IMG/VR virus record: IMGVR_UViG_3300021197_001489
Coordinates: 252,013 to 316,012 of that record
Length of the DNA stretch: 64,000 bases
Reading direction: 5' to 3' (one strand)
Position 1 is the first letter of the stretch. Each line of letters starts with the position of its first letter. Position numbers and translations under genes: made by a program. The notes under the pieces were generated by a model, which had not been told where the DNA came from, did not search any database, and saw only the letters and a program-made list of their open reading frames with translations. Below, one piece after another: positions 41,764-63,304 of the stretch.

Positions 41764-41775
41764 ATAAGTAGTAGT

Positions 41776-45074: not shown

Positions 45075-45080
45075 AATAAA

Positions 45081-45461: not shown

Positions 45462-45463
45462 GC

Positions 45464-45793: not shown

Positions 45794-45799
45794 ACTACA

Positions 45800-46114: not shown

Positions 46115-46136
46115 TTTTAAAACTTAGGAGAATACA

Positions 46137-46313: not shown

Positions 46314-46343
46314 AACCTAACTATCAATTTACAAGGAACAGTC

Positions 46344-47020: not shown

Positions 47021-47025
47021 TTTGG

Positions 47026-47062
47026 TTGACTTTGTCGCACACTATGTTATACTGTATACAGT
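47026..47062 (+). promoter_or_regulatory. Early promoter with perfect palindrome
   Basis: TTGACT-N16-TATACT; ACTGTATACAGT palindrome at 47051-47062. Confidence 0.8.
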
Positions 47063-47086
47063 GAAATTAGACGGAGCAGCTATCAA

Positions 47087-47470
47087 ATGACTATGCATTT
47101 AGTGAGAGGCATGTCCAGCCTCAAAACACAAGGTCATAAACACACAGGTTTGACACAGCGAGACAGAGACGCCAAAGTCGCACATGATAAATGGTTGCGC
47201 GAGCGTGGATTGCATCCTACACAACTCAAAGCAAAACTTCCGCATAATGCAAAAGGCAAACGCTTAGGTGTAGGTACGATGCCTGACTATAGCTCAAGGC
47301 AAGAAACTGTGCCCACTAGTGATCGTATTATGGCTACTGCAACCAAGAAGCATGAGAATACATATACAGGTAACGAGATTGCAGGCATTGGATTGTTACA
47401 CAAAAGTAATCTTGTTCCTGTGCGCAAGGACAGTAACGACGCAAAAGAAATTGCTAGAATGAGGAGATAA
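47087..47470 (+). CDS. Basic hypothetical protein
   Basis: MHLVRGM start, YTG..IAGI..LHKSNLVPV...AKEIARMRR end. Confidence 0.85.
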   Translation: MTMHLVRGMSSLKTQGHKHTGLTQRDRDAKVAHDKWLRERGLHPTQLKAKLPHNAKGKRLGVGTMPDYSSRQETVPTSDRIMATATKKHENTYTGNEIAGIGLLHKSNLVPVRKDSNDAKEIARMRR

Positions 47471-47472
47471 CA

Positions 47473-47646
47473 GTGGCACTTGGCAGCGTTGGACAGAATC
47501 TATTACACGCTCTGCAATGGGAAATATATGACTTTAGGGTAGCAGACGCTAAGGAGCAATGGGATCTAGACCAAGATGAAGCAGCGGCTGTTGAAAAGTG
47601 GATGGTTAATCGTATCGAACAACTTAGGAAACAGAGGGACGAATGA
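47473..47646 (+). CDS. Small protein (57 aa)
   Basis: GAGGAG RBS, GTG start. Confidence 0.65.
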   Translation: MALGSVGQNLLHALQWEIYDFRVADAKEQWDLDQDEAAAVEKWMVNRIEQLRKQRDE

Positions 47647-47810
47647 AACATTTGGTGGTTGATACTGTAAACAAAGTAACACAAACAACTCGTTTATATA
47701 CCTATGACATTGACGAGCCGCAACAGGTCACACAGTTGCTGGAAAAACACAACAACAATAATGAATTTGTTGCTGCTTACAAGGTGATTGAGCATGAAGC
47801 GAGTGTATAG
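47643..47810 (+). CDS. Small protein (55 aa)
   Basis: ATGA overlap; GAGG RBS. Confidence 0.65.
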   Translation: MKHLVVDTVNKVTQTTRLYTYDIDEPQQVTQLLEKHNNNNEFVAAYKVIEHEASV

Positions 47811-48099
47811 TGTAACCATTAATGGTGCTAACGATTGTGTGTGTATGACTGAGTCAGAAGCATCATTTGTTACTTTGAAGTTTGCTGAAAAATTAAAAAT
47901 GTATGACATGACTGCACGTCACGGAATGAAGCCTGAACACTTGCACAAATTACAACGCTATGAAGATGCATTGTTGCCTCATAACTGTGTGCGAGTTGGC
48001 GCAAAGCCTATCTACACCAAGGGCATTGGTCCAGGACAATTTGGCGGCTCTGCACAAGTGATGTGGGAATTTCAAGACCTAATGGAGATGAAAATATGA
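47794..48099 (+). CDS. Hypothetical protein
   Basis: Contiguous in the operon. Confidence 0.7.
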   Translation: MKRVYSVTINGANDCVCMTESEASFVTLKFAEKLKMYDMTARHGMKPEHLHKLQRYEDALLPHNCVRVGAKPIYTKGIGPGQFGGSAQVMWEFQDLMEMKI

Positions 48100-48374
48100 C
48101 TAAGTATACACAACAAATTGAGCAAGACGGCGTAAAGGCTGCATTGATCAATGGAATTATTGAAGTTGCATTTACCAAAGCAGATGGTAGTTTGCGCAAA
48201 ATGAATGCTACACTGTTAGAAAGTGTAGTTCCTAAAGCAAACAAGGAGGACCCTCTAAGCACCAAAGCAGTGCGCAAAGTCTCACCAGAAGTTTGCGTAA
48301 TTTGGGATGTTGATGCCAACTGTTGGAAAAGTTTCCGCTGGGATCGACTGAAAACTGTAGAGGAGAAAACTTGA
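48096..48374 (+). CDS. WYL_2/DUF2693-like small SH3-fold protein
   Basis: VAFTKADGSLRKMNATL and WDVDANCWKSFRWD. Confidence 0.75.
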   Translation: MTKYTQQIEQDGVKAALINGIIEVAFTKADGSLRKMNATLLESVVPKANKEDPLSTKAVRKVSPEVCVIWDVDANCWKSFRWDRLKTVEEKT

Positions 48375-48589
48375 GTAAAGAAGGACTTGTTACTTTTGAA
48401 GGTAAGGTAACTGAATTGCTACGTGGTGGTATGTTTCGCGTAATTATCGAAGGTAATGGCCACGAACTTATAGCACAATTAAACGGTCGAATGCGCATGC
48501 ACAAAATCAAAGTGCTGTCTGGCGATACTGTGGAATTAGAAGTATCGCCATATGATCTTTCTAAAGGCCGTATTACCCGGCGTCGGTAA
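48371..48589 (+). CDS. infA: Translation initiation factor IF-1
   Basis: TTG start after AGGAG; EGKVTELL..GMFRV, GRMRMHKIKVLSGDTV.LEVSPYDLSKGRI. Confidence 0.93.
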   Translation: MSKEGLVTFEGKVTELLRGGMFRVIIEGNGHELIAQLNGRMRMHKIKVLSGDTVELEVSPYDLSKGRITRRR

Positions 48590-48619
48590 ATATTCCTGTA
48601 ACAACAACAAGGAACTCCT

Positions 48620-49078
48620 GTGCTATCAAAATTAGATTTCAAACAAATAGTAAACATTCTTGGCGACGATCCAGTTCGACCACACCTCAATGGCAAATTT
48701 CGCTGCACCAAGGGTCGCGAAGTGTACGCACTCTATGAAGATCAATTTGCTGAACAAGCACCAGTTCTTCACAAAGGGCCACTGGCAGTAATTTGTGTAG
48801 CCTACACCAACGAAGTTCCAATCACTGAACAGGAACTTGAACAGTACAGTGATCCTAACGGAAACATTGCAGTGTTTTACACAGTGTGGAGTTACAACCG
48901 CGGCGCAGGACGACAGATTGTTCTGGATGTTGCAAGTTATTTGAAACGTGAGCGCAGCGTAACACGCTGGGTGACTCTTAGCCCACTTACAGAAATGGCA
49001 GAACGTTTCCATTTACGCAACGGCGCCACACTGCTCGCACGTGGAGCGGAGTGCCAAAACTTTGAATACATGGTATGA
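48620..49078 (+). CDS. GNAT-fold-like protein
   Basis: IAVFYTVWSY..GAG..I and VTLSP, reminiscent of the malonyl-CoA decarboxylase/GNAT fold; family call tentative. Confidence 0.55.
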   Translation: MLSKLDFKQIVNILGDDPVRPHLNGKFRCTKGREVYALYEDQFAEQAPVLHKGPLAVICVAYTNEVPITEQELEQYSDPNGNIAVFYTVWSYNRGAGRQIVLDVASYLKRERSVTRWVTLSPLTEMAERFHLRNGATLLARGAECQNFEYMV

Positions 49079-49785
49079 TTCTTCCAATTACAGAAGTTGA
49101 ACACTACACTGATCAACTGTTTCGTATCAAGCTAGAAAGACCGCAATCGTATAGATTTAATGCAGGTGAGTTTACCATGATTGGGCTGTCTAAAGGCGAT
49201 ATTAGTCGCGCATACAGCTTCACTAGCGGCCCTGGCGATGATTACCTAGAGTTTTACAGCATCAAAGTACTTAATGGCCCGCTTACAGGACGTTTACAGC
49301 ATGTGAAACCTGGCGATACGTTAGAAGTTGGAGACAAACCCACAGGAAGTCTTACACTTGCAAATATTGAACTTGGCGGCAATTTATGGTTGTTAGCAAC
49401 AGGCACAGGCATTGCGCCTTTTATCAGCATCCTGCGTGACCCTGCAACATATGATTGTTTTGACAGCGTAACAGTAGTTTGGAGTGTGCGCACAGAACCA
49501 GAGCTGGATGCGTATCAAGACTTTATTAACGAAATGCCTGTGCGTTTTATACCTGTGATTACACAGGCAGGCAATACGTGGAGAGGTCTAGACACCCGCA
49601 TAACAAACTTGCTAGATTGGAAATGCATATTAGTAGACCGTGATCCTGCTCTAAACAAAGTGATGATTTGTGGCAGTCTTGACTTCAACAATGATGTAAA
49701 AACACGTCTGACTGATTGGGGTTGGAGCGAAGGGAATCGCAAAAGTGCAGGCACATTTGTGGTTGAACGTGCATTTGTTGGATAA
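49075..49785 (+). CDS. fpr: Ferredoxin-NADP+ reductase (bacterial Fpr type)
   Basis: FNAGEFTMIGL, RAYSF, GPLTGRL, LATGTGIAPF, MICGS, E.AFV end. Confidence 0.92.
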   Translation: MILPITEVEHYTDQLFRIKLERPQSYRFNAGEFTMIGLSKGDISRAYSFTSGPGDDYLEFYSIKVLNGPLTGRLQHVKPGDTLEVGDKPTGSLTLANIELGGNLWLLATGTGIAPFISILRDPATYDCFDSVTVVWSVRTEPELDAYQDFINEMPVRFIPVITQAGNTWRGLDTRITNLLDWKCILVDRDPALNKVMICGSLDFNNDVKTRLTDWGWSEGNRKSAGTFVVERAFVG

Positions 49786-49792
49786 GTACAAT

Positions 49793-50347
49793 ATGCAAGA
49801 AGATATCAGAAACCTTATACAATTAACCGAAGCCAAAGAAGAAAAACTTGCGGCTGATCCGTTACCATATAGCAGTGGTGATCTAGAACCTGTACTGTCA
49901 AAAGACAACGTCGATTATCACTACAATGTGCTAACCAAAGGCTATGTAAATCGCTACAACAAAGGCGAAGGTGATCCGAAGTTTAATTATGGTGGAGCAA
50001 AACTGCACAATCTTTTCTGGACACAACTACAACCACCTAAAGGATCAAACCGTCCTAAAGGGACGATTAAAGAGTTCATCGACAAGCATCATGAAGACTA
50101 TGACAATTTCAAAAAAGAAATGCTTGCTGCGGCTATGAGCATACAAGGTTCGGGTTGGGTATATCTTGCCAAAAACGGCAGTATAAAAACTACACCCAAT
50201 CAGTCATACAAAACTGATATACTGTTGCCAATTGATATGTGGGAACACAGTTTTATGGATTATATTCCAGCAAAAGATGCTAAGAAAAAATACATTGAAA
50301 ACATGATGAAGATTGTTAACTGGGATGTTATTAACGGGAGACTATGA
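49793..50347 (+). CDS. sod: Fe/Mn superoxide dismutase with short N-terminal extension
   Basis: LPY..DLEP, YHY....GY, LHNLFW, QGSGWVYL, DMWEH; ATAAGTA motif at 49782. Confidence 0.9.
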   Translation: MQEDIRNLIQLTEAKEEKLAADPLPYSSGDLEPVLSKDNVDYHYNVLTKGYVNRYNKGEGDPKFNYGGAKLHNLFWTQLQPPKGSNRPKGTIKEFIDKHHEDYDNFKKEMLAAAMSIQGSGWVYLAKNGSIKTTPNQSYKTDILLPIDMWEHSFMDYIPAKDAKKKYIENMMKIVNWDVINGRL

Positions 50348-50514
50348 TGATTAAAAAATTTATTACAAGCAGACTTGACGAGCGCACTAGTTGGGACGGC
50401 GCGGCACTTATTGCAATTGGTGTAATTATACTGATTGCAGGACCGTTTGCCAAACTTGCAGCTTATGCAGCTATAGCTTATGGAGCATGGACAATATGGA
50501 AAAAAGAACAGTAA
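50344..50514 (+). CDS. Small two-TM protein (56 aa, not in ORF track)
   Basis: GGAG RBS; RLDERTSWDGAALIAIGVIILIAGP...IWKKEQ*. Confidence 0.75.
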   Translation: MMIKKFITSRLDERTSWDGAALIAIGVIILIAGPFAKLAAYAAIAYGAWTIWKKEQ

Positions 50515-50999
50515 AACTTGCACTGGTTGCAATCTTATGTTTTGGTCTTGGAATACTGGCAACCTGGATTGGTTGCTCAATTTGGGACAAACACAGCCAC
50601 AGGATAACTTGGGAGTACCCAATTACCAAAATTAATGGAGAAACTCCTCCGGGCAAAATGCAGCCATTGGTAAACACTGAAACCATGCTTGATACAACAC
50701 AAAGCGACGGTATGCGTTTGGTAGTGATGAAAGGCACACGACTTGCAGGAACTAGAGTTGCAATACATGTGCATCAATACGGTGGTCACACCTGTGTACT
50801 CGAAGGAACCATAACTGATTTTGTTGAAGGTAAACCAAACGGCGTTTATCCAGCAGGCACCTGTTATTATATGCCAGCAAATACTCCAATGAGTGCTGCC
50901 AATCTTGGAACAGAAGATGCATTATTAATTGATACATTTGTTCTTCCGTTTGATGTTCCAACGATTACAATAATGGAGCCAGGGTATGACACAGAATAA
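50496..50999 (+). CDS. Membrane-anchored cupin protein
   Basis: N-terminal TM; HVHQYGG..CVLEG, YPAG.CYYMP, MSAAN. Confidence 0.8.
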   Translation: MEKRTVKLALVAILCFGLGILATWIGCSIWDKHSHRITWEYPITKINGETPPGKMQPLVNTETMLDTTQSDGMRLVVMKGTRLAGTRVAIHVHQYGGHTCVLEGTITDFVEGKPNGVYPAGTCYYMPANTPMSAANLGTEDALLIDTFVLPFDVPTITIMEPGYDTE

Positions 51000-51144
51000 A
51001 CCGGCAATGGCTCCTAAAGAGCCAGGGCAAAAACCCAAGAATAAATGGGACTACAGTAAAGAATACAGCGAGCGTGACTGGATGCGAACTGTAGGCTACG
51101 GAACGCCAGATGGAAAGTATTTCAAAGATGATAACGATCACTGA
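50986..51144 (+). CDS. Small protein (52 aa)
   Basis: GGAG RBS; bridges the cupin and iscA genes. Confidence 0.55.
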   Translation: MTQNKPAMAPKEPGQKPKNKWDYSKEYSERDWMRTVGYGTPDGKYFKDDNDH

Positions 51145-51433
51145 AGAAGCAAAACAGTATTTGGATAAAGTACGCAACGACGACTACGTTACACTTGGTG
51201 TAAAGGGTGGTGGCTGTTCAGGCTTTACCTATGTGTGGGACTTTAAAAACAACTGGCCAGATGTAAACTGGAGTGAGCCATACGCAGATGCACTGGTGTT
51301 AGACCCAATGGCAGAAATGTTTGTAGCAGGTTGTACCATAGACTACAAAAATGAACTAGGTGGTAGTTATCTTACAGTAATCAACCCAAATGCAACTGCA
51401 ACCTGTGGCTGCGGGGAGAGCTTTGCTGCTTAA
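51128..51433 (+). CDS. iscA: Fe-S cluster assembly A-type carrier (IscA/HesB)
   Basis: ITITEEA, GVKGGGCSGFTY, IDY, NPNATATCGCGESF. Confidence 0.93.
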   Translation: MITITEEAKQYLDKVRNDDYVTLGVKGGGCSGFTYVWDFKNNWPDVNWSEPYADALVLDPMAEMFVAGCTIDYKNELGGSYLTVINPNATATCGCGESFAA

Positions 51434-51436
51434 TCC

Positions 51437-51443
51437 ATAAATA
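51437..51443 (+). promoter_or_regulatory. Late promoter ATAAATA at the start of the structural cluster
   Basis: ATAAATA 24 nt before ATG 51467; the same motif occurs at 12441, 15541, 52390 and 61177. Confidence 0.7.
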
Positions 51444-51466: not shown

Positions 51467-51928
51467 ATGGCACAACAAATAATCGACTTAGGAACTTCGG
51501 CAAACGCAGGCGACGGTGATAATCTTCGCAGTGCAATGGATAAAACCAACGATAACTTCACTGAAGTTTACACTGCTGGTCCAGTTGGTTCAAACATTTC
51601 AATCACAAACAACTCAATTTCAAGCACCAACACAAATGGCAACATTACACTAGCCACAGATGGCACTGGTGTTATTCAAGTTGCTAACGATATTGTACCT
51701 GATGTTAACAACACACGCTGGATTGGTAGTGCTAATGTACGTCCATTAGGAGCATACATCGGAACTGCTGGAGTAATAAGTTCAGGACCATTGACTCTTC
51801 CTACATTTGCAGACAATACCGCAAGAGATGCTGCAATTACGCAACCAGCCGCGGGTATGATAATCTTTAATACAACAGGCACAAAGTTCCAAGGATACAC
51901 AGGCAGTGCTTGGGTTGACTTAAACTAG
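51467..51928 (+). CDS. Baseplate/fibre-attachment structural protein
   Basis: gp9/gp10-like N-terminus IDLGTSANAGDGDNLRSAMDKTNDNFTEVY; AAGMIIFN...FQGY..AW. Confidence 0.75.
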   Translation: MAQQIIDLGTSANAGDGDNLRSAMDKTNDNFTEVYTAGPVGSNISITNNSISSTNTNGNITLATDGTGVIQVANDIVPDVNNTRWIGSANVRPLGAYIGTAGVISSGPLTLPTFADNTARDAAITQPAAGMIIFNTTGTKFQGYTGSAWVDLN

Positions 51929-52370: not shown

Positions 52371-52423
52371 ACTTTAGTTTACAATTGCCATAAATACTCA
52401 TAACAGCAAGTTAGAGGTTCAGT

Positions 52424-54574
52424 ATGGCAAGACAAGTAATTAATGTAGGCGCAACCGCAAATGACGGCACCGGAGACGGTCTCCGTACTGCCTATATCAA
52501 GTGTAACGATAACTTTCAAGAACTGTATCAAACCTCAACAACTCCTATACAGATTGTCAACGGCACTTCAAACGTAGCAGTTACTGAAAATGCCAATGTC
52601 ACGGTATCAATTGCTGGCAGTGCCAATGTTGTAAACTTTGCTGGCAGCATAACAGAATTTACCGGTAATGCTTCTATCAGTGGCGACCTGTCTATTGGTA
52701 ACAGTGTAACTGTTACACAGGACGTTACAATAAGTGATCAACTTATTATTGTAGGCACCCTGGGCAGCAATATGATTCCTGACGGTAACGGCACTAGAGA
52801 CTTAGGGTCAAATGCAGCAAAATGGAAGGACCTATATCTAAGCGGTACCAGTACCGTCCTTGGAAATATAACGTCATCAGCAAACATAGCTGGTGCTAAT
52901 ATTATTGCATCACAAGATGTTATAATTGCCGGGCAACATGTCACAACTGGAAATGTAACAGCTGGGAACATAATCACTGCTGGTGTTGTCACTGCAACAG
53001 GTAATGTCACCGGTGGAAACTTGGTTACAGGCGGTTCTGTAGCAGCAACTGGAGATATTAGCGGCGCAGCTATTACAGCAACAGGCAACTTTAGTGCATT
53101 AAATATTACTGCAACAGGCAGTGCAAACATAACTGCTGGCGGCTTTTTTGTAGGTGATGGTGGATTTTTATCCAACGTCACTGCCGCGTCAAACGTTGCA
53201 GTAACTCAAATTGCCAACGGAACATCAGTTGTAGGCATAAGTTCATCAGGTGGTAACGTTGAACTTACATCAGGTGGTGTATTAACATTCCAATCAAACG
53301 GCACAAACTTAGACGTACTTCGACCACTCACAGTAACTGGTAACGTAACTGCTACTGGAAACACAAGCGGCGGTAACTTAATTACAGCTGGTAGAGTTGT
53401 TAGTACAGGAAACATAGTATCAAGTGGTAATATCAGTGCTGTAAACTTCTTAGGTAACGGTAGTTTCTTAACGGGCGTTGCATCAACTGCTATAACAAAC
53501 GGCACATCAAATGTCACAGTTGCAAGTGGCGCTGCTACAACAGTTGGAGTTGCTGGCACTACTAGGCTTACTGTAAGTGCAACTGGCGCCGCTGTAGCAG
53601 GACTAATAACTGCAACTGGCAATATTACTGCTACAGGTAATGTAGCAGGCGGAAACGTAGTAACTGGTGGTTTAATAACTGCAACAGGCAATATCACTGC
53701 TACAGGTAATGTAGCAGGTGGAAACCTAGTAACTGGTGGTGCAGTAATTGCTACCGGGGCAGTAACTGGTGCAACACTTGCCGGTGACGGATCAGCATTA
53801 ACTGCACTAAATGGAACCAATATAGCAAGTGGTACAGTTGCAGCCGCTAGAGTGGCAACACTCAACCAAAATACAACTGGTAGTGCAGCCACACTCACAA
53901 CCGCAAGAGCAATTGCACTAACAGGTGACGTAACTGGTACTGCCGACTTTGATGGTAGTGCAGGCATTAGTATTGCGGCTACTATTGCAGCTAACTCAGT
54001 TGCACTTGGCACAGACACAACAGGTAATTATGTTGCTACAGGTGCAGTTAGCGGTGTTGGTCTTAGTGGTAGTTCAAGTAGTGAAGGTGGTACATTTACT
54101 GTAACATCAAATGCTACAAATCTTAACACAGCCTCAACTATTGTTGCAAGAGATGCCTCAGGTAACTTTGTTGCTGGCACAATAACTGCACTTGCAACTT
54201 CAGCACAATATGCTGACATTGCAGAGATGTATAGCAGTGATCACCCACACGAACCCGGCACAGTGCTAGAGTTTGGCGGTGCAGCAGAAGTAACCCGTAG
54301 CAGTCAAGACGCTTCGCCAAGAGTAGCAGGAGTAGTGAGTACCAAGCCAGCACACTTGATGAACAACGAACAAGATGGTGTTGCAGTTGCATTGGTAGGG
54401 CGCGTACCAACACATGTTGTTGGTCCTGTGCGCAAAGGTGACATGATGGTTGCCACAGCAAATGGCAGAGCAAGAGCCGAGGCTAATCCAGCAATGGGAA
54501 CTGTGATTGGCAAAGCACTGGAAAATTTTGATGATGCTCAAGGGACAATTGAAGTAGTAGTAGGAAGGTTCTAA
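52424..54574 (+). CDS. Tail fibre protein
   Basis: gp9/gp10-like N-terminus, TATGN[IV] repeats, C-terminal YADIAE...PGTV...G..VAL.GRVP...G.VIGKALE chaperone-like domain. Confidence 0.85.
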   Translation: MARQVINVGATANDGTGDGLRTAYIKCNDNFQELYQTSTTPIQIVNGTSNVAVTENANVTVSIAGSANVVNFAGSITEFTGNASISGDLSIGNSVTVTQDVTISDQLIIVGTLGSNMIPDGNGTRDLGSNAAKWKDLYLSGTSTVLGNITSSANIAGANIIASQDVIIAGQHVTTGNVTAGNIITAGVVTATGNVTGGNLVTGGSVAATGDISGAAITATGNFSALNITATGSANITAGGFFVGDGGFLSNVTAASNVAVTQIANGTSVVGISSSGGNVELTSGGVLTFQSNGTNLDVLRPLTVTGNVTATGNTSGGNLITAGRVVSTGNIVSSGNISAVNFLGNGSFLTGVASTAITNGTSNVTVASGAATTVGVAGTTRLTVSATGAAVAGLITATGNITATGNVAGGNVVTGGLITATGNITATGNVAGGNLVTGGAVIATGAVTGATLAGDGSALTALNGTNIASGTVAAARVATLNQNTTGSAATLTTARAIALTGDVTGTADFDGSAGISIAATIAANSVALGTDTTGNYVATGAVSGVGLSGSSSSEGGTFTVTSNATNLNTASTIVARDASGNFVAGTITALATSAQYADIAEMYSSDHPHEPGTVLEFGGAAEVTRSSQDASPRVAGVVSTKPAHLMNNEQDGVAVALVGRVPTHVVGPVRKGDMMVATANGRARAEANPAMGTVIGKALENFDDAQGTIEVVVGRF
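53604..53740 (+). repeat. Two-copy 69-nt (23-aa) tandem repeat in the tail fibre
   Basis: LITATGNITATGNVAGGNVVTGG / LITATGNITATGNVAGGNLVTGG, units starting at 53604 and 53673. Confidence 0.9.
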
Positions 54575-57500
54575 ATGGCACAACCAGTTTGGGTAACACC
54601 TGCAGGAGACCTCGGAACTATTGCCGAAAGTTTGTTCTTCCAAGTACCAATTGAAGCAACTGACTCAGATGGCTCAACAGTAAAGTACAGTTTGATAGCT
54701 GGCAAACTTCCTGAAGGTATTCAAGTAACAGAAAACGGTAGCATTGAAGGTGTACCGCTGGCATATGCTAGAGTCAAGGGTGTACCAACTGAAGTTTCTG
54801 AAAACGTAACATCAACATTTGCAGTCCGAGCTACTAGTACAGTTGATAGTCAAATTAACGACAGAACATTTGAGTTAACTGTTACTGGTCAAGATATTCC
54901 AACATTTACTACACCAGCTGGGTCGCTAGGCACATTTTTTGACAGTGATATAATTAATATTACAATTGGGTTTACTGATCAAGATCCTAACGATACTGTG
55001 GTAATCACAGTTGACAACGGAGAATTACCACCCGGATTAACTATCAATCCTACAACTGGTGTGATATCAGGATATATAGTGCCAGTAAGCAATTTGCCTG
55101 ATGATGCTACTTCAGGATTTGATGCTAGTGAATGGGATTTGTATCCGTTTGATTTTTCTACTCGCAGTATAAACAAAACCTATGAATTTACACTGAGCAT
55201 TACAGATGGTAAAGATCAAAATTTAAGAACGTTTTCAATGTATGTGGGCAGTCGCGACAGTTTAACCGCAGACACCACAGACTTTACAGCAGACAGTGAA
55301 GTGTTGACAGCAGATCTGTCGCCACAGCGTACTCCACTTATTACAAATTTCCCAGCAGCGGATCCACCATATGCAGCAGGATTTATTGGCCTGTTTAGAC
55401 ATGACAATTTCTTTGCATACCAAATTCTAGGATTGGATCTTGATGGAGACGCATTTGAATTTGAAATTGCATTAGGAGATTCAAGTGACATTCCCCCTGG
55501 ATTGGTATTTGATAGATTCACAGGTTGGCTAACTGGCTTCTTCCCAGATCAAGGTGCAACAGAAAAAGACTACAGTTTTGCTATCACCATTTACAAAAAA
55601 GACAACAACGCAGTTGTAAGCGAACCTTATAACTATACGATGTCGGTTATAGGCAGTATTGAAAGTTCAGTTACTTGGCTGACCGGCACATTGATTCCAG
55701 ACAGAGATGTGAATGATCCAATATACAGTCTTGGCACAATAGACAACGGCGAAACCAGCATGCTGGCTGTTAAAGCAACCAATCCAAGTGGGCGTTTTTT
55801 ACAATTTAAACTAAAAGCTGGCAGCTATCCAAGCACACCAGGGCAGTACAACTTGCTACCACAAGGGTTGCAACTTTTGGCTAGCGGTGAAATTGCCGGA
55901 CGTGTAAGTTTTAATACCTTTGCAATTGATGGAGGAACAACCACATTTGACAAAAATACCACAACAAGGCTTGAGAACGCTGAAACCACATTTGATAAAG
56001 CCTTTGACTTCACTGTGGTTGCATATAGCAGTGATGGCCTGGTCAGTGTAAGCAGAAAGTTCCGTATCACAGTTGACAGAGCATACAACTCACCATATAA
56101 TGGATTATATATCAAAGCCATGCCGGATCAAGCAGATAGAAATTTTGTAAACAGCCTTTTACAAGACACAGATATCATTCCTCCTAGTCGTGTATATCGT
56201 CCTGATGATCCCTATTTTGGTGTGGCTAAAGATGTGGTATACAATCATGCATACAGTTTAGACACTGCTACACTTGACGAATACTTACTTGCATTAAGCA
56301 AAAACCATTTTCGCAAAAAGATTATTCTTGGACCTATTAAAACAGCACAAGCACTCAATCCCGACGGGTCTGTTGAATACGAAGTTGTTTACAGCGACAT
56401 TGTTGACACAGGAGTGAATAGTTTAGGACAAAGTCCAGCACAAAGTATCACACTTCCTTATCCTGCAACAGTGTACAGCGAAACAGCCACTGAAGCACGA
56501 CAATTGTTTGAAGACAACTTCACCAACGGCAACGTTGCAGATGCAAATGTAACTGCACTGGATCAAATGAGTGTTGCTTACTTGGAAGAGTCAAGAGACC
56601 TAAACATGTTGGCAAACATTGCAAGTCAGATGGCAAAAGATTGGATAGCTGATGGACAACCTGGAGACCCTGCTCCAATATGGACTGGCGATAAGTATAT
56701 TCCAAATCCCAAAGTAAACGATGTGTTCAACTGGACTCCCAGTAACCAATGTCCTGTAAACATGGAAGAGCCGCTTAGATATGACAAATTTAAAACACAG
56801 TTAGCAGCTCTAACAGCCAATGACATAATATGGTGTGATTACACAGTTGAAGTGGATGATAAAGCTGATCCTGAAGGTAAGAAGAAGAAAACTGTTCGCA
56901 GTATTGCTCCTTTTGGATGGCTAATCGAATACGGTGATACTGCGTACATTGTGATGCGTGGTACACAAAATGAATATGATGGCAAGATCGACACCATGGC
57001 AGCCAAAGTTATCAATCCAATTGCTGGATTTGGCAAAGGCAAAACACACAACGGATTTACTATTGCTTACAAAGGGCTTGGTCCAAAAGGCGAAGAGCGT
57101 CCTGCAGATGTCCCAGGTATCAGTTTGTTTGATGCACTAAACAACACCACTAAAACAAAAATCAAAATTGGCGGACACAGCCTTGGCAGTGCAATCAGCA
57201 CACTTATAACCAATTATGCACAAACTTTTAACAAGTTTGACCGCATTGAAGGATATGTAAGCGCATCACCAACAGTGGGCAATCAAAAATACGCCGACTA
57301 TTTCAATGCTCTTCAAGACAAAGACGGCAACATGCTGGGCAACACTTTCTACAGACTCACAAACAAAAATGATATTGTGCCAATGATACCTGGATCATGG
57401 TTACAATATATAGCAGTAGCACAAGAAGTGTTATTTGATGCTCCTTACACTGATCCTGATAACCTTGTAAAAACTGCAAAAAATCATCAGATTTGTTGTT

Positions 57501-58441
57501 GCTATGCGTATGCACTTAAACATCCACTGGATGTATTCAATCCTAGCAATGAAGATTCATCATGCAAGTTCCCTGTTGGACCGGCAAGTCCGGATTATTT
57601 CTCACTGGAACAACATCTTGACAGTTTGATATTGTATTACGGTTCGTGGGTAGATAACCCTGATGGCACAGTTTCCACCACTTTCACTACTGTATACCCA
57701 AACAGTTTGATCAATATGAGAGATCAAGTGATTGATGTAGTAGGACAACAAAGTACAGTACTTCCGCTGTGGATGACCACAAAGCAAACAGACGGCAGAG
57801 TGTTAGGATTTACCAAGGCATGGGTAATTTGCTATGCACAACCTGGTGAAAGTGACCGAATCAGTTACAACATACGCACACAGTTTGGCGAAATATTAAA
57901 CAGAGTAGACTTCATCAGTGATAGATATATCCTGGACAATCAACTAACTGCCGCTTGGGTACCAAACGAAGACTCAACAGACGGCGGCAACTGGAATCCA
58001 AGTCCACCACTTAGCACAACGTTTGATGTCGACTTTTACGTTGACTGGACTGCAATATCAACTGCTATACTTGGAATTGCTGTTGGCCTCACCAATAATT
58101 TAAGTCCAGTTGCAAATGCTGTTACGAGTGGATTTGCCAACGGCGACTTCAACGAAAGTGGTGTTATTACTGCCGCAGATGCACTTGATGCGGCCAAATT
58201 CGGAGCTGATACGTTAGAAGATGGTACTGCAAAAACACGCATCCAAACTATTTTTGAGCCAGCACTAAGACTTGCACGGACTAACGACCCAACAACGTAT
58301 AATGAATATTTTGTTGGTGCAGGAAACACAACCACATTTGATGGCAACAGTTTGAGGTTTACTAGCCCTGTGGATGTTTACGGCAAGACGGACAAGTATG
58401 ATAAATACCTCGTATTCCCCAAGACGAATATTTTAGGATAA
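54575..58441 (+). CDS. Baseplate wedge-like structural protein with inserted class-3 lipase domain
   Basis: Ig/cadherin-like W.TPAG.LG repeats with GxLPxGL; internal IVMRGT, HNGF, GGHSLG, NxNDIVP, NH; wedge-like C-terminus. Confidence 0.8.
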   Translation: MAQPVWVTPAGDLGTIAESLFFQVPIEATDSDGSTVKYSLIAGKLPEGIQVTENGSIEGVPLAYARVKGVPTEVSENVTSTFAVRATSTVDSQINDRTFELTVTGQDIPTFTTPAGSLGTFFDSDIINITIGFTDQDPNDTVVITVDNGELPPGLTINPTTGVISGYIVPVSNLPDDATSGFDASEWDLYPFDFSTRSINKTYEFTLSITDGKDQNLRTFSMYVGSRDSLTADTTDFTADSEVLTADLSPQRTPLITNFPAADPPYAAGFIGLFRHDNFFAYQILGLDLDGDAFEFEIALGDSSDIPPGLVFDRFTGWLTGFFPDQGATEKDYSFAITIYKKDNNAVVSEPYNYTMSVIGSIESSVTWLTGTLIPDRDVNDPIYSLGTIDNGETSMLAVKATNPSGRFLQFKLKAGSYPSTPGQYNLLPQGLQLLASGEIAGRVSFNTFAIDGGTTTFDKNTTTRLENAETTFDKAFDFTVVAYSSDGLVSVSRKFRITVDRAYNSPYNGLYIKAMPDQADRNFVNSLLQDTDIIPPSRVYRPDDPYFGVAKDVVYNHAYSLDTATLDEYLLALSKNHFRKKIILGPIKTAQALNPDGSVEYEVVYSDIVDTGVNSLGQSPAQSITLPYPATVYSETATEARQLFEDNFTNGNVADANVTALDQMSVAYLEESRDLNMLANIASQMAKDWIADGQPGDPAPIWTGDKYIPNPKVNDVFNWTPSNQCPVNMEEPLRYDKFKTQLAALTANDIIWCDYTVEVDDKADPEGKKKKTVRSIAPFGWLIEYGDTAYIVMRGTQNEYDGKIDTMAAKVINPIAGFGKGKTHNGFTIAYKGLGPKGEERPADVPGISLFDALNNTTKTKIKIGGHSLGSAISTLITNYAQTFNKFDRIEGYVSASPTVGNQKYADYFNALQDKDGNMLGNTFYRLTNKNDIVPMIPGSWLQYIAVAQEVLFDAPYTDPDNLVKTAKNHQICCCYAYALKHPLDVFNPSNEDSSCKFPVGPASPDYFSLEQHLDSLILYYGSWVDNPDGTVSTTFTTVYPNSLINMRDQVIDVVGQQSTVLPLWMTTKQTDGRVLGFTKAWVICYAQPGESDRISYNIRTQFGEILNRVDFISDRYILDNQLTAAWVPNEDSTDGGNWNPSPPLSTTFDVDFYVDWTAISTAILGIAVGLTNNLSPVANAVTSGFANGDFNESGVITAADALDAAKFGADTLEDGTAKTRIQTIFEPALRLARTNDPTTYNEYFVGAGNTTTFDGNSLRFTSPVDVYGKTDKYDKYLVFPKTNILG

Positions 58442-58453
58442 AAAGAGAGAAAC

Positions 58454-59362
58454 ATGGCAAGCAACATCAACCCCAACAATATCGATACCACCTACCCTAT
58501 TGCTGGGCAGGATAACGACAGCCAGGGCTTTCGTGATAACTTTACAAACGTCAAAACAAACTTTGAATATGCAGAGACTGAAATTGATGATTTGCAAGCA
58601 AAAGGTATCTTCAAAAGTGCGCTGACCGGCACAACATTAGACAACGACATGGCAGGCGGACTAATCAAAAACGCAAAAACACAAGGTTTTCGCGGGACAC
58701 GCATTGCACTTGGTGCAGTAACTGGTTCAACAGCAATTGATTATAGTGCAGGACAGTGGTATACTGTTACTACATCTGGATCAATTACACTGGCATTTAG
58801 TAATATTCCAGCAAGCGGCAACGCAAGTTGGTTTAATGTTCGAATCAATGTTGCCAACATTGCACACACTGTTACACTTCCAGCCACAGTTGGAGCAAGT
58901 GGTTCTGCACAGAGTGTAGCCGGCATCCAAGGCATCAGTTCAAATGTAATTACATTTAACGAAACTGGCACCTATGAGTTTGAATTCCACACAGATGACG
59001 GTGGAACAACAATTTACCTAAGTGAACTAACACGCCCACGCAACAGACTGATGAATCCAATACAGCTTGCAGGCAGTGAAGATTTAGCCGCATCTGGTGC
59101 AGCCAGTTTAGCAAAGACTACCAGTTACTTTACAACAGGCGGTGCAGAAACAAGCACACTAGCCGCAGGTGTTGAAGGACAAGTTAAAGTCCTTGCTATG
59201 CTAGGCGATGGCGGTGATATGGTAACCACAGTGACTAATGCAGGATGGAAAGCATCAGGCACAGGTATTATTACATTCAGCGACATTGGCGAAGCAGTAA
59301 CACTTATGTATATCAATAGCAAATGGTTTTGCATTGGTAACAACGGCGCTGCGTTTGGATAA
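58454..59362 (+). CDS. Putative baseplate/virion structural protein
   Basis: MASNINPNNIDTTYPIAGQDNDSQGFRDNF N-terminus; beta-rich domains; lies in the structural cluster. Confidence 0.8.
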   Translation: MASNINPNNIDTTYPIAGQDNDSQGFRDNFTNVKTNFEYAETEIDDLQAKGIFKSALTGTTLDNDMAGGLIKNAKTQGFRGTRIALGAVTGSTAIDYSAGQWYTVTTSGSITLAFSNIPASGNASWFNVRINVANIAHTVTLPATVGASGSAQSVAGIQGISSNVITFNETGTYEFEFHTDDGGTTIYLSELTRPRNRLMNPIQLAGSEDLAASGAASLAKTTSYFTTGGAETSTLAAGVEGQVKVLAMLGDGGDMVTTVTNAGWKASGTGIITFSDIGEAVTLMYINSKWFCIGNNGAAFG

Positions 59363-59377: not shown

Positions 59378-59425
59378 TTGACATACTGACTCCTCTACGC
59401 TATAATTAGTAAAGTGTAGAGGAGT
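59378..59425 (+). promoter_or_regulatory. Sigma70 promoter nested in an RBS-sequestering hairpin
   Basis: TTGACA-N17-TATAAT; ACTCCTCTACGC (59389-59400) pairs with GTGTAGAGGAGT (59414-59425). Confidence 0.75.
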
Positions 59426-59429: not shown

Positions 59430-59840
59430 ATGACACAAGTAGATTTAAATCGTTACAAAGAATTTGTTCAAACAGTAACAAGCGAACAAAGCAATGATAC
59501 AATAGCAATGCATCTGGCAATGACTGAACTAGAAGCAGTTAGTGGTGTTAACATGGCACTGTTGTTGACTGGTGCAGTTGGACTTAGTGCTGAAGGTGGC
59601 GAGTTTATGGAAATTGTAAAGAAGTGCATCTTTCAAGGCAAACCCATGGATGAAGATACGCAGTTCCATGCAAAACGTGAATTGGGAGACATCATGTGGT
59701 ACTGGATTAACAGTTGCCGCGCACTCAACATTGATCCCAATGATGTTATTGAAGAAAATGTACGCAAATTAGAAAAACGCTATCCCGGCGGAAGTTTTGA
59801 TGTGCATTACTCAGAGAACAGACAAGCAGGCGATCTCTAG
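59430..59840 (+). CDS. mazG: MazG-like nucleotide pyrophosphohydrolase
   Basis: GLSAEGGEFMEIVKK, ELGDIMWY, NVRKLEKRYPGG.F. Confidence 0.9.
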   Translation: MTQVDLNRYKEFVQTVTSEQSNDTIAMHLAMTELEAVSGVNMALLLTGAVGLSAEGGEFMEIVKKCIFQGKPMDEDTQFHAKRELGDIMWYWINSCRALNIDPNDVIEENVRKLEKRYPGGSFDVHYSENRQAGDL

Positions 59841-60064
59841 TGGAACATCCGTTAATTGGTAACATTGACGAGCTGTCCGAAAGTGACATCATTGACAAAA
59901 TTACTGAACTTAACAAAAAGTATTACGCAAGTATGAGACTGGGCAACTCCCACTTAACCAATCAAGTAGGAATGGCACTTGAAACATACCGCAACAAACT
60001 GTCGGAAAAGCAGCGTAAGCGCAGTGCCGGCGACGATTTTGAGGATAAAATAAACATATCATGA
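59840..60064 (+). CDS. Small helical hypothetical protein
   Basis: GTG start overlapping the mazG stop. Confidence 0.75.
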   Translation: MEHPLIGNIDELSESDIIDKITELNKKYYASMRLGNSHLTNQVGMALETYRNKLSEKQRKRSAGDDFEDKINIS

Positions 60065-60705
60065 GCTATGTACGGTTAGGGTTCAACCCACAATTTTATG
60101 CAGCAGTTCACACACCCGACGGTATTATTATGAACAGCTATCATGTAGACATGCAAATGGTAACTGTAAGCAATAACAGTTATGATCAAAACATTGCATT
60201 AGCTCGGGTAAAGTATATCATATTTGAACAATTCTGTAACAGCATTTTCATTGACCAAACAGAAACAGACGCAATTGCTGCATACGAAGCAGCAGGGATG
60301 CAGTGCGTTGGCTTTCCTACCGAACCGGTTGATCAAATTGTAGGTCTTGCGTTATACTTAAAGTTAAATGCAGTTATTGAAGATGTAATACAAATATCAG
60401 ATTTGAACTTGCACAGTGACGCCGGCGGCGGTATCACATATCTGCATCACGATGACGAAGAGATAGGACCGTTTGACGACGAAGGGTGGTGGCACGGCAG
60501 TCATCCAACCTGTGCTATTGGAAAACAAAAAGGCAAAGTGGTAACACTAAATGATACAACTTGGAAAAATGTTGATCTAGAATGGGACGACGAAGACGAT
60601 GATGAACCAGAAGTAGAAGTTGAAATCATTGTTGACGGACATATATTTCCAGAAGAATCAGTTACAGAAAATGTTGTAGAATTCAAACCCAATGATAAAA
60701 AATAA
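60061..60705 (+). CDS. Hypothetical protein with acidic tail
   Basis: 214 aa, contiguous in the operon. Confidence 0.8.
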   Translation: MSYVRLGFNPQFYAAVHTPDGIIMNSYHVDMQMVTVSNNSYDQNIALARVKYIIFEQFCNSIFIDQTETDAIAAYEAAGMQCVGFPTEPVDQIVGLALYLKLNAVIEDVIQISDLNLHSDAGGGITYLHHDDEEIGPFDDEGWWHGSHPTCAIGKQKGKVVTLNDTTWKNVDLEWDDEDDDEPEVEVEIIVDGHIFPEESVTENVVEFKPNDKK

Positions 60706-61180
60706 GTTTGGCGAACAAGTATATAATATAGAAGATGTAGTGGATCTCATAATGAGCGATCAAAACATCTCTGGTATCACTGTGGATCAAACAGTAACAA
60801 CACCTGTTGGTGTTGATGTAGAGTTTTGCACACAAACTGTTGAAGATATCAATGTACAAGAATACGACAAGCGCAATCAACAAAACTGGTTGATGCCTGA
60901 TGAATACAAACAGTTAGACATTGCAGCACACATTATTGATTGCTGCAAGACTGATGCTGAACTACAACGTGCAGCACAAGAATTGTTGTTGTTCCAAGAA
61001 CGTGACTTGTTTAACTTGTTACGGTATCTCAAGTATCTAGTAGACACAATGAAATCCAATAGCATCATTTGGGGTGTTGGTCGAGGATCCAGTGTGGCCA
61101 GTTATGTGTTATACTTGCTAGGGGTACACAGAGTTAACAGCATGTACTATGATTTAGACCCCACCGAATTCCTTAGATAA
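60692..61180 (+). CDS. dnaE: Stand-alone fragment of DNA polymerase III alpha
   Basis: R...EL..F...L...L.Y...LVD......WGVGRGSSVASYVLYLLGVHRVN...YDL...EFLR*, matching the DnaE GRGS region. Confidence 0.8.
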   Translation: MIKNKFGEQVYNIEDVVDLIMSDQNISGITVDQTVTTPVGVDVEFCTQTVEDINVQEYDKRNQQNWLMPDEYKQLDIAAHIIDCCKTDAELQRAAQELLLFQERDLFNLLRYLKYLVDTMKSNSIIWGVGRGSSVASYVLYLLGVHRVNSMYYDLDPTEFLR

Positions 61181-61211
61181 ATATAAAGTACGCATAGAAT
61201 AGGAGTGTTAC

Positions 61212-61679
61212 ATGGCACCAAAACGCACATATCGAACATCGCAAGGCAAGGCGGTTGACCTCGGCGCATTGTTGTTGCAAAATGAAAATGTCAGAGCAGT
61301 TGGCAATATGGGCGTAAATGCCCGCGGTGACAGAATTGACAACAAAGGCAAAGTTGTTGATAGCAAAGTACAGCAGACCAAACGTCAGTACAACAAACAG
61401 ATCGGGCCAGTTGACGAGGTTCCACCAACAAGCCGCCGGGCAGTTGAAGATGTTATGCCAGCGCCAGTTGACAATAGTGCTTCTAAAAAACCAAAGGCCA
61501 AGAAGCCTAAAGTTTCTAAAGCAACGCCAGTTGTAGATGAATCTGTAATTGGTGTGTCGCCGCCATTACCTGCTGGCGGACTTGCTGATGCTATTGCACG
61601 AGCCAGAACTGTTAAACAAGAACAAGCAAAAACCCCAAGACAACTTGCACAAGAAAAAGCTGGAGTGAGAAAAATATAA
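61212..61679 (+). CDS. Basic late hypothetical protein
   Basis: ATAAATA (61177) and AGGAG upstream; AVGNMGVNARGD motif. Confidence 0.8.
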   Translation: MAPKRTYRTSQGKAVDLGALLLQNENVRAVGNMGVNARGDRIDNKGKVVDSKVQQTKRQYNKQIGPVDEVPPTSRRAVEDVMPAPVDNSASKKPKAKKPKVSKATPVVDESVIGVSPPLPAGGLADAIARARTVKQEQAKTPRQLAQEKAGVRKI

Positions 61680-62101
61680 TGGCCAATACACAAAACATTA
61701 ATGCAGTCAAAATCAGTCGTAACGGATTTAAACCTCTACACAGTGATGTCATTGTGGAAGACATGATATTCGGCGAGCGTAGTTTACAAAGCGGTATTAT
61801 TCTGCTCAACGATGATGGACAAGGTCATGGCATTCGTCCACGCTGGGGCAAAGTGTATGCAGTTGGTCCAGAGCAAACTGATGTTGTTCCTGGGCAGTAT
61901 GTAATGGTTGCACATGGACGCTGGAGTCGCGGATACAAGATTCAAGACGATGATGGTGAAACTGTAATCCGCAAAGTTGATCCCAAAGATATGCTCATGG
62001 TCAGTGACGAAGACCCAGGCAATGACGATACACTTAGCGATGCAGTCAGCATTGGCACAAACAGCATGCCAGAATCGAGCAAATTCTACAAAGGCGAATA
62101 G
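61679..62101 (+). CDS. groES: Co-chaperonin GroES
   Basis: FKPLHSDVIV, mobile loop SGIILL, GKVYAVGP, V.PGQYVMV. Confidence 0.88.
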   Translation: MANTQNINAVKISRNGFKPLHSDVIVEDMIFGERSLQSGIILLNDDGQGHGIRPRWGKVYAVGPEQTDVVPGQYVMVAHGRWSRGYKIQDDDGETVIRKVDPKDMLMVSDEDPGNDDTLSDAVSIGTNSMPESSKFYKGE

Positions 62102-62110
62102 CCTTTCTCA

Positions 62111-62139
62111 TTGACATCTCACTGTACATCTGTTATACT
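62111..62139 (+). promoter_or_regulatory. Sigma70-like promoter
   Basis: TTGACA-N17-TATACT with TG extension. Confidence 0.8.
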
Positions 62140-62161
62140 CTAAACAATGATAGGAGTAGTT

Positions 62162-62278
62162 ATGACAGACATATTATTAATAGGATTAGTGGTAGTGTAT
62201 CTTGTGCTAACAGGCATGCAGATGTACAACCTTAGAGAACTGCGTCAAACAATTGAAAAATATATTACAAGAGATTAA
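62162..62278 (+). CDS. 38-aa membrane peptide
   Basis: AGGAG RBS; MTDILLIGLVVVYLVLTGMQ...*. Confidence 0.65.
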   Translation: MTDILLIGLVVVYLVLTGMQMYNLRELRQTIEKYITRD

Positions 62279-62324
62279 ACACTACTTGGCATGGTACAAA
62301 CAACTACGCAAGCAGTACGGAGTC

Positions 62325-62354
62325 TTGACATCCTTAGGGGCTTTCCTATATAAT
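62325..62354 (+). promoter_or_regulatory. Sigma70-like promoter for the clamp loader
   Basis: TTGACA-N18-TATAAT. Confidence 0.7.
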
Positions 62355-62386
62355 GCCAAGCACTACAACTTAGATGGAAGTTACAA

Positions 62387-63304
62387 ATGAAACAATTGTG
62401 GACTGAAAAGTATCGCCCTAAAGACATTGACGGCTATGTGTTTCGCGACAATGAACAAAAGTCACAGGTAAAAAGTTGGATTGATTCAGGTGCTATTCCG
62501 CACTTGTTGTTTAGTGGTGCGCCTGGTGTTGGCAAAACAACACTGGCAAAGATCTTGATCAATCAGTTGGAAATTGACAGCTATGATGTGTTAGAAATTA
62601 ACGCATCAAGAGAAAATTCCATTGACACTATTCGTGACAAGATCACAGGCTTTGTGCAAACCATGCCATTTGGTGATTTCAAGGTTGTACTACTGGATGA
62701 GGCTGATTATATCTCACCAAACGGACAAGCAGCATTGCGTGGTGTGATGGAAACGTATCATGCAAGTGCTAGGTTTATACTGACTTGCAACTATCCCAAC
62801 AGAGTAATTCCTGCACTGCATTCACGTTGCCAAGGCTTCCACATTGAACGTGTTGACCTAACAGAGTTTACTGCAAGAGTTGCAACTGTGTTGGTAGAAG
62901 AAGGTGTTGAATTTGATCTTGACACACTGGACACTTATGTAAGAAGCACATATCCAGATTTGCGTAAATGCTTAAATCTGTGTCAAATGAATTCGCAGGA
63001 TAGTAAACTGGCCAAGCCCAAGGGTGATGAAGGTGCAAGTGCAGACTGGCGCATCAGTGCAGTTGAACTGTTTAAAGCAGGCAAAATCATTGAAGCAAGG
63101 AAGTTAATGTGCAGCACAGTGCGTCCAGAAGAAATGGAAGATGTGTTTCGCTGGATGTATGACAACTTGGAACTGTTTTCGGACTCACAAGAAGGACAAG
63201 ACAGTGCTATTGTGATTATTAAAAATGGCTTGGTCAATCACAGTTTTGTGGCAGATCCTGAGATCAATCTAAGTGCAACAATGGTAGAACTAGCGCAGAT
63301 TTAG
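62387..63304 (+). CDS. Sliding-clamp loader subunit (RFC-small/T4 gp44-like)
   Basis: WTEKYRP, GAPGVGKTT, LEINAS, LLDEAD, FILTCNY, SRC motif. Confidence 0.93.
   Translation: MKQLWTEKYRPKDIDGYVFRDNEQKSQVKSWIDSGAIPHLLFSGAPGVGKTTLAKILINQLEIDSYDVLEINASRENSIDTIRDKITGFVQTMPFGDFKVVLLDEADYISPNGQAALRGVMETYHASARFILTCNYPNRVIPALHSRCQGFHIERVDLTEFTARVATVLVEEGVEFDLDTLDTYVRSTYPDLRKCLNLCQMNSQDSKLAKPKGDEGASADWRISAVELFKAGKIIEARKLMCSTVRPEEMEDVFRWMYDNLELFSDSQEGQDSAIVIIKNGLVNHSFVADPEINLSATMVELAQI

Follow-up and report, generated by a model that had tools for sequence, protein, structure and literature searches.

We describe here a gene in which a complete class-3 lipase unit lies in frame within the turn of a hairpin of a larger protein, a scaffold of immunoglobulin (Ig)-like repeats that most of its homologues carry without any lipase. 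The gene is found in a stretch of 64,000 nucleotides (hereafter the window, to whose first letter all positions refer unless stated otherwise) forming the last 64 kb, positions 252,013 to 316,012, of the 316,012-bp IMG/VR virus record IMGVR_UViG_3300021197_001489, which is estimated to be 91% complete. A first-pass annotation of the window, made from the letters alone, had proposed an in-frame and lineage-restricted lipase insert at this place, and this was borne out, since about 400 amino acids are missing from most homologues. The record encodes a major capsid protein of T4 type (Gp23, E=5e-98), and seawater or marine metagenomes of at least nine studies contain near-identical sequence, which makes the source a T4-like jumbo phage, uncultured and widespread in the sea. 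The psbA gene, sought in the genome as a test for a cyanophage, was not found, and a tRNA search gave nothing useful. The lipase-carrying gene (the carrier) is present in a single copy in the window's own genome, and over 1500 homologues came from a search of 5.8 billion proteins, the longest of their contigs reaching ~340 kb. Its parts are as follows, all on the plus strand.

54575..58441, +, whole gene, 1288 amino acids, Ig-repeat scaffold plus lipase cassette (open frame, homologues)
54575..56089, +, about five tandem Ig/cadherin-like (He_PIG) domains, residues 1 to ~505 (Pfam He_PIG, model of the insert-less homologue P0039)
56090..56476, +, first part of the alpha+beta domain that hosts the insert (host domain), residues ~506-634, ending in the hairpin strand ITLPYPATV (P0039 model strand 627-635)
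56477..57673, +, inserted cassette, residues 635-1033 (missing from insert-less homologues)
within the cassette, +, N-terminal linker 635-661, predicted complete class-3 lipase unit 662-1012 and C-terminal linker 1013-1033 (alignments of stand-alone lipases)
57179..57181, +, codon of Ser869, nucleophile in GHSLG (invariant in 37/37 carriers)
57371..57373, +, codon of Asp933 in NKND (invariant; aligned to Asp203 of Rhizomucor lipase)
57485..57487, +, codon of His971 in KNHQ, candidate triad histidine (only invariant His after Asp933)
57674..58033, +, second part of the host domain, residues 1034-1153, opening with the returning hairpin strand STTFTTVYPNSL (equivalent to residues 638-756 of insert-less homologues)
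58034..58321, +, second variable site, residues 1154-1249, here 96 amino acids with an EF-hand/dockerin-like loop DFNESGVITAAD
58322..58441, +, C-terminal 39 amino acids (...KYLVFPKTNILG) and stop codon (kept in nearly all homologues)

The insert and its boundaries

The reading frame is open from 54575 to 58441, in agreement with the uninterrupted frame first reported for it. By BLASTP the typical homologue, of about 800 amino acids, aligns with residues 1 to ~635, ~1034 to 1153 and 1249 to 1288 of the query without the stretch between. Among 80 scaffold loci sampled from IMG/VR with an insert-less query, the insertion site holds 0-6 amino acids in 76 and 374-404 amino acids, all of them lipase, in the remaining four, which is a less biased frequency than one taken from the >1500 homologues or from the scaffold tree, where sampling is skewed to the query type. 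In an AlphaFold2 (AF2) model of the insert-less P0039 (predicted local distance difference test score, pLDDT, 77) the site corresponds to the two residues SD, which form the turn of the hairpin ITLPYPVTI-SD-QSITTV, and residues 635-1033 of the query stand in place of that turn. The true boundaries of the insert are thus at about residues 635 and 1033, or nucleotides 56477-57673. The two TVY tripeptides by which the insert had originally been delimited are indeed located at residues 632 (nucleotide 56468) and 1039 (nucleotide 57689), but they form no meaningful repeat. The upstream TVY is not conserved in other carriers, which have TVQ, TIY or TI- there, and the two codon triplets have 7 of 9 nucleotides in common with no longer DNA repeat around them; a target-site duplication or recombination scar was rejected on these grounds and the pair is coincidental.

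Both junctions are spanned by independent Logan contigs from three studies (X2, records 10 and 11; X7, records 26 and 31; X18, records 2 and 3, the last being metatranscriptome assemblies, where presence is no proof of transcription), and the same architecture recurs in over 30 independent clusters of homologues drawn from JGI, ENA and Logan. Chimeric assembly, or the joining of two genes by a frameshift, which the origin of the window in a metagenome-assembled virus record might bring to mind, is therefore almost certainly not the explanation, and the insert and the scaffold also have the same base composition (GC 0.41).

Identity, fold and catalytic residues of the lipase

The Pfam family Lipase_3 (PF01764) matches residues 791-940 with E=3e-16 and 60 bits against a cut-off of 22, and is matched again, with 65 bits, in a six-frame scan of the phage's own genome; the only PHROG match of the carrier protein is esterase/lipase. 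The motifs on which the lipase was first recognised are exactly where they had been placed, with YIVMRGT at residue 791, HNGF at 825, GGHSLG at 866, NKNDIVPMIP at 930 and KNHQ at 969, and so is the Ser869 codon at 57179. A profile built from the family matches Rhizomucor lipase (E=1.7e-23) and pairs Ser869 with Ser144 and Asp933 with Asp203, both of them triad residues of that enzyme.

The lipase fold was confirmed by an AF2 model of residues 500-1160 (model numbering is the residue number minus 499) compared by Foldseek and VIA. Residues 640-1029 form one confident globule, with a pLDDT of 73-98 per 10-residue block and a single block at 68. The VIA matches cover essentially whole chains (among them 2yij, 1uza, 4tgl and 6xok) and are led by plant phospholipase A1 (PLA1; 2yij, 7x0c, 7x0d) with Z-scores of 23-24 over 276-279 aligned residues that include the N-terminal helices, followed by feruloyl esterase A (Z 22-23), Rhizomucor lipase (Z 22.7) and Thermomyces lipase (Z 21.8); Foldseek against PDB and Swiss-Prot concurs, with E-values of ~1e-10. 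The GHSLG motif at 867-871 forms a strand-turn-helix elbow in the model (strand 363-369, helix 371-384). With the profile threshold passed and the nucleophile elbow, the aspartate and the fold all in place, the domain is a member of the class-3 lipases.

Ser869, Asp933 and the histidine that the first-pass annotation had picked out (KNHQ, His971) are invariant in 37 carriers, whose overall identity to the query is 38-99%. No histidine after Asp933 other than His971 is invariant, and His971 is conserved in at least 90% of sequences when the stand-alone relatives are included; in the model it occupies the canonical position, a loop that follows the last core strand and precedes a helix, and the sequence alignments to solved lipases end before it. 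Two other candidates, His983 and His1014, were rejected because each is substituted in some carriers; the part of the sequence aligned with whole lipase chains moreover does not extend to His1014. The intact and conserved catalytic residues indicate what is predicted to be a working hydrolase. A dead binding module used for adhesion, that is, a pseudoenzyme like EDS1/PAD4, whose lipase-like domains do occur among the structural matches (Z 15-17), is very improbable with Ser, Asp, His and the GHSLG elbow invariant in 37/37 carriers and nearly so in the stand-alone relatives, and we consider this explanation, like that of a chimera, effectively excluded.

A run of three cysteines directly follows the candidate catalytic histidine (residues 974-976), with further cysteines at 726, 754 and 997; at least 90% of relatives share Cys726 and Cys974. 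By analogy with secreted fungal class-3 lipases these cysteines may form disulfides, which would fit an extracellular environment.

Relatives of the lipase and history of the cassette

When the insert alone was compared with 1.84 billion representatives, its nearest relatives outside the family were stand-alone Lipase_3 proteins, mostly of ~280-440 amino acids and 29-45% identical to it. Those checked by BLASTP (335-437 amino acids, 29-35% identical) span residues 662-1012 of the query, and on these alignments the cassette is read as a whole lipase gene plus linkers of ~27 and 21 residues. No detectable relative of the insert was found among 50,697 cultured-phage genomes. On IMG/VR contigs of 9-59 kb (L010-L018) the stand-alone lipases, of 351-438 amino acids, always follow a protein of 554-670 amino acids (phrog_1392), and this conserved pair makes up a two-gene island on the plus strand amid exonuclease, epimerase and QueE genes on the minus strand; very short contigs gave nothing useful on the context of stand-alone lipases.

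On a tree built from the scaffold alone, the presence of the lipase changed at least eight times, six of these changes being forced by well-supported branches. Three comparisons illustrate how the cassette varies independently of the protein around it.

P0019 vs P0039, scaffold 98.8% identical, insert present vs absent
P0010 vs P0019, scaffold 98.6% identical, inserts 47.7% identical
P0019 vs P0020, scaffold 82% identical, inserts 91% identical

P0025 combines a scaffold of P0110 type (100% identical outside) with a segment of P0010 type between ~residues 585 and 1125 of the query, which places the recombination breakpoints in the conserved flanks. When a tree is built from the lipase columns, the inserted copies form one clade whose sisters are the stand-alone lipases, and the sole apparent exception, P0128, is a carrier truncated at its 5′ end. 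The simplest history that these trees suggest would be that the lipase was captured once, diversified into at least three types, and was afterwards exchanged and lost through homologous recombination. The lipase is missing in 76 of the 80 sampled loci and is therefore dispensable.

The second variable site (residues 1154-1249) behaves similarly, homologues carrying 0, ~8, 35, 90, 160 or 258 amino acids there, and in two of the runs examined, X18 and X6, an allele co-occurs in which 37 nucleotides replace 301 (joint 58020 to 58322). The second-site cassettes have no Pfam match. We also considered whether one genome might hold two paralogous carriers, as the 539,231-bp ENA contig ctg49515_10x_l (L088, L089) has two copies ~324 kb apart with lipases of P0010 and P0030 type; this was rejected, since the whole region, complete and syntenic, occurs twice on the contig, which probably represents two related ~320 kb genomes joined together.

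The carrier scaffold

The first-pass annotation had called the carrier a baseplate wedge protein and its flanks wedge-like, and this label has to be abandoned. Neither Pfam nor PHROGs gave a match to a T4-type wedge family, of which gp6, gp7, gp8, gp10, gp11, gp25 and gp53 were considered; the Pfam matches of the carrier are Lipase_3 and He_PIG only, and those of the insert-less P0039 He_PIG only. No baseplate protein fold appeared in the top 50 matches of Foldseek against PDB or of VIA-wide, with a model whose predicted template modelling score (pTM) is 0.52, at which a weak match could be missed. The real wedge module lies elsewhere, with gp5-like hub-lysozyme, gp25-like and gp6-like genes at ~117-126 kb of the record, the gp6-like gene matching phrog_10646 (E=2e-279). 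Adjoining this gp6-like gene, on the minus strand at 108000-117400 of the record (L170, 1-9400), is a gene for a giant virion structural protein (phrog_10938, E=4.5e-246) of more than 2100 amino acids in the part that was fetched.

Residues 1 to ~505 of the P0039 model are all-beta, and their top Foldseek and VIA matches are cadherins and the SraP adhesin. The host domain resembles 2H phosphoesterases over whole chains (CPDase, Usb1, LigT and AKAP18, Z 9.4-10.9). The HxT/S catalytic motifs of these enzymes were sought in it and not found, its conserved His560 and His580 lying in HAYS and HFRK contexts, and judging from the model the host domain is apparently a structural re-use of the 2H-phosphoesterase fold. 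Protein-atlas features gave nothing useful for this domain. Neither a signal peptide nor a transmembrane segment could be read from the sequence of the carrier. The 'S8 peptidase' proteins of Sinorhizobium phage Phosso and Agrobacterium phage Atu_ph07 were considered as a common enzyme-display scaffold and rejected, as only their Ig repeats match.

Neighbouring genes and late-promoter-like motifs

The genes and motifs next to the carrier that bear on its expression and role are listed below.

51467..51928, +, short fibre-like gene, 153 amino acids, with the same gp9/10-type N-terminal motif as the next gene (PHROG, weak Pfam T4_gp9_10_N)
52424..54574, +, upstream fibre-like gene, 716 amino acids, gp9/10-type N-terminal motif (PHROG matches)
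58454..59362, +, downstream gene, 302 amino acids, syntenic in all relatives, with a putative fibre-like N-terminus
52389..52396, +, CATAAATA, T4-late-promoter-like motif, 28 nt before the ATG at 52424
51436-51443 and 58400-58407, +, late-promoter-like sites resembling CATAAATA

The products of the genes at 51467 and 52424 both begin with the gp9/10-type motif MAxQxIxxGxxANxGxGDxLR...NFxExY. For the gene at 52424 the PHROG matches are minor tail protein and tail fiber protein, with baseplate wedge subunit at the N-terminus only, and for that at 51467 baseplate wedge tail fiber connector (E=1e-10), next to the weak Pfam match. The 302-aa gene at 58454 has no family match in Pfam or PHROGs. The order of a fibre gene, a 142-aa gene, a second fibre gene, the Ig-scaffold gene, the 302-aa gene and MazG is syntenic in relatives of more than 300 kb, whether they carry the lipase or not.

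The ATG of the carrier at 54575 directly follows the stop of the fibre-like gene at 52424, and the lipase gene is therefore likely to be co-transcribed with it, CATAAATA probably driving both. The motif NATAAATAC, which differs from the T4 late promoter TATAAATA at one position, precedes the ATG at 51467 by 24 nt, that at 52424 by 28 nt and that at 58454 by 47 nt. Seven of the nine ATAAATA sites on the plus strand lie at most 61 nt upstream of the start of an open reading frame, such windows making up ~4% of the sequence; the strict TATAAATA showed no enrichment. The motif NATAAATA(C) is probably the T4-type late promoter of this phage. On the plus strand the seven sites lie at 8040, 12440, 15540, 51436, 52389, 58400 and 61176, 2-61 nt before starts of open reading frames, and it precedes hsp20 and fibre-like genes.

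A perfect sigma-70 consensus (TTGACA-17-TATAAT) lies within the coding region of the carrier at 56073-56101, ~370 nt before the insert. It was considered as a promoter for a shorter product and rejected, as it is not conserved in relatives and is probably there by chance. A second perfect consensus, at 59378-59406, is intergenic and stands just before MazG.

Possible function of the lipase carrier

The Ig stalk, the fibre-like neighbours, the late-promoter-like motifs, the lack of a signal peptide and the swapping of the cassette together favour an exposed host-interaction protein, and we give roughly even chances to the view that the product is a late, virion-displayed lipase or esterase acting on the envelope of the host. 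In this mechanism, a stalk of about five Ig-like domains would lead to the small alpha+beta domain, in whose hairpin turn a whole stand-alone phage class-3 lipase, with Ser869-Asp933-His971 as its putative triad, would have been captured once. The lipase would then have diversified into at least three types and have been moved between scaffolds, replaced and deleted through recombination in the conserved flanks. During adsorption or penetration the enzyme may hydrolyse an ester-linked component of the host envelope, and this hydrolysis could locally loosen or remodel the surface. As candidate substrates we would name glycerolipid of the outer membrane, cleaved in the manner of PLA1, or else the lipid or acyl groups with which surface polymers are substituted. 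A more specific version, which we regard as rather unlikely, is that the particle of this contractile-tailed phage carries a working PLA1-type enzyme, as an exchangeable cassette, that opens or thins the outer membrane of the host at the site of contact. Such a cassette might be switched on, switched off or exchanged in marine phage populations to match host envelopes, or might serve to free virions from membrane-vesicle decoys, and the particle-borne PLA1 would then be a counterpart of the lipase effectors in type VI secretion (T6SS Tle) and of the phospholipase A2 of parvovirus capsids.

Several observations weigh against a virion-displayed enzyme of this kind. Most sampled members of the family do without the lipase (76/80). 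The stand-alone relatives, in smaller phages, sit among exonuclease, epimerase and QueE genes and not among tail genes, and MazG and DNA-polymerase genes adjoin the locus itself. The carrier gene, at 306.6-310.5 kb of the record, is ~185 kb from the baseplate module, and no characterised structural protein was found to match the scaffold. The pTM of the scaffold model is only 0.52 and the prediction for the query is poor in its host domain, so that these models do not fix the orientation of the lipase relative to the scaffold. As for the chemistry, His971 is a candidate triad histidine by its conservation and its topology, and the substrate is a guess. Display on the virion is read as probable from the fibre-like neighbours, the late-promoter-like motifs and the hypervariability of the cassette.

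Some of the same observations would suit a late lipase that never enters the virion, an accessory to lysis or a membrane-remodelling enzyme analogous to LysB, acting on host membranes from the inside or on release, with the Ig repeats used for binding to the envelope. The stand-alone relatives among replication and metabolic genes on viral contigs of 12-59 kb, the location of the gene, remote from the core structural module and adjoining MazG and DNA-polymerase genes, and the fact that lysis genes too run from late promoters all agree with it, and phage lipases in lysis cassettes are documented (PMC12173070, PMC6116114). However, the gene is embedded among fibre-like genes, one of which it directly adjoins, the Pfam and PHROG scans of its neighbours turned up neither holin nor endolysin, and the product has neither a signal peptide nor a transmembrane segment with which to reach the periplasm. 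The stalk of ~500 amino acids and the strain-level swapping of the cassette are moreover typical of exposed host-recognition proteins. We regard a non-virion lipase, whether for lysis or for membrane remodelling, as rather unlikely.

The enzyme might also be displayed on the virion as an esterase of carbohydrates or other polymers instead of a lipase, stripping acyl or feruloyl-type esters from capsule, lipopolysaccharide (LPS) or particle polymers and thereby modifying or destroying a receptor. Feruloyl esterase A is the best single-sequence PDB match of the insert (Z 22.8), Ig-like stalks are suited to polymer binding, and known tailspike esterases deacetylate LPS or capsule (PMC5380687). 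On the other hand, the longest and best structural matches are to plant phospholipase A1, including its N-terminal helical extension (279 residues, Z 24), the class-3 family is dominated by hydrolases of acylglycerols and phospholipids, and the known phage deacetylases have the SGNH fold and do not belong to class 3. Both the polymer-esterase explanation and the receptor role that goes with it appear to us doubtful.

Comparison with known systems

To our knowledge, nearly every enzyme carried by tailed-phage particles is a glycanase, a peptidoglycan hydrolase or an SGNH deacetylase, and full-text searches of the literature brought up no structural or fibre-cluster protein of a phage described as having PF01764. 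With the class-3 lipases (plant DAD1-like PLA1, Aspergillus FaeA, and those of Rhizomucor and Thermomyces) the cassette has in common the alpha/beta-hydrolase fold and the GHSLG elbow, and with plant PLA1 also the N-terminal helical extension. It differs from them in its 15-23% identity and in being nested in the hairpin of another protein, where they are free-standing or secreted, and its histidine segment NHQICCC does not align by sequence with that of the fungal enzymes.

Esterases of the SGNH/GDSL type on tail fibres and tailspikes (cryoconite islands, phi11 Tal, Vi-phage deacetylases) likewise place an ester-cleaving module on a host-interaction protein. The present enzyme, in contrast, is a class-3 alpha/beta hydrolase with GHSLG and has neither the SGNH fold nor the GDS(L) motif; it is nested in a loop whereas the fibre esterases are terminal, and its carrier is no recognised fibre or spike. 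The metagenomic islands of tail-fibre GDSL lipases in cryoconite phages (PMC7468147) offer a parallel to a hypervariable and swappable enzyme domain, as both they and the cassette undergo strain-level replacement, with variants ~46-48% identical in otherwise near-identical genomes. Virion lipases of Cellulophaga and Pseudomonas phages have been predicted and never validated (PMC5380687).

The analogy with the T6SS drawn in the first-pass annotation is fair at the level of the domain, Lipase_3 effectors being in existence, but 9cys, the solved T6SS lipase effector of E. cloacae, is structurally more distant (Z 12). The Tle lipases (Tle2/TseL type) have in common with the cassette a GxSxG lipase, a putative link to a contractile machine and membrane phospholipid as a conceivable target. 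They differ in that no VgrG, PAAR or immunity gene was found among the neighbours scanned and there is no Hcp linkage, and in that the mode proposed here is display on a particle, not secretion. T4 Hoc and other Ig decoration proteins also combine a string of Ig domains with a C-terminal domain that possibly anchors them, and are dispensable and variable; the carrier is much larger and bears an enzyme, and the likeness noted is one of domain layout, with no sequence relationship found.

Near-identical marine jumbo phages, sampled in many ocean studies, have this scaffold either empty or with a lipase that belongs to one of three or more types, and they offer a clean natural experiment. If it is both particle-borne and active, lipid hydrolysis would be added to the entry toolkit of contractile phages, and the self-contained domain would be tractable for trials on Gram-negative envelopes. 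The hairpin site is, in addition, a case of natural grafting of a whole-gene domain that is useful for understanding and engineering display scaffolds.

Other genes of the region

Auxiliary and replication genes lie on either side of the fibre cluster (window positions 41731-51433 and 59430-63304). On one flank are genes for a B12-binding radical SAM protein, a FAD/NAD oxidoreductase, an Fe/Mn superoxide dismutase, a cupin and a product with an IscA/HesB-like C-terminal CGCGESF motif, and on the other MazG, a DNA-polymerase fragment and a clamp loader. Elsewhere in the window, Hsp20 is encoded at 8108 and an ATP-dependent DNA ligase at 337. In close relatives, the fibre cluster has a Peptidase_S8 (subtilisin-like) gene immediately after the first fibre-like gene (L088, 6245-7438; L089, 5330-7096), which is absent from the window.

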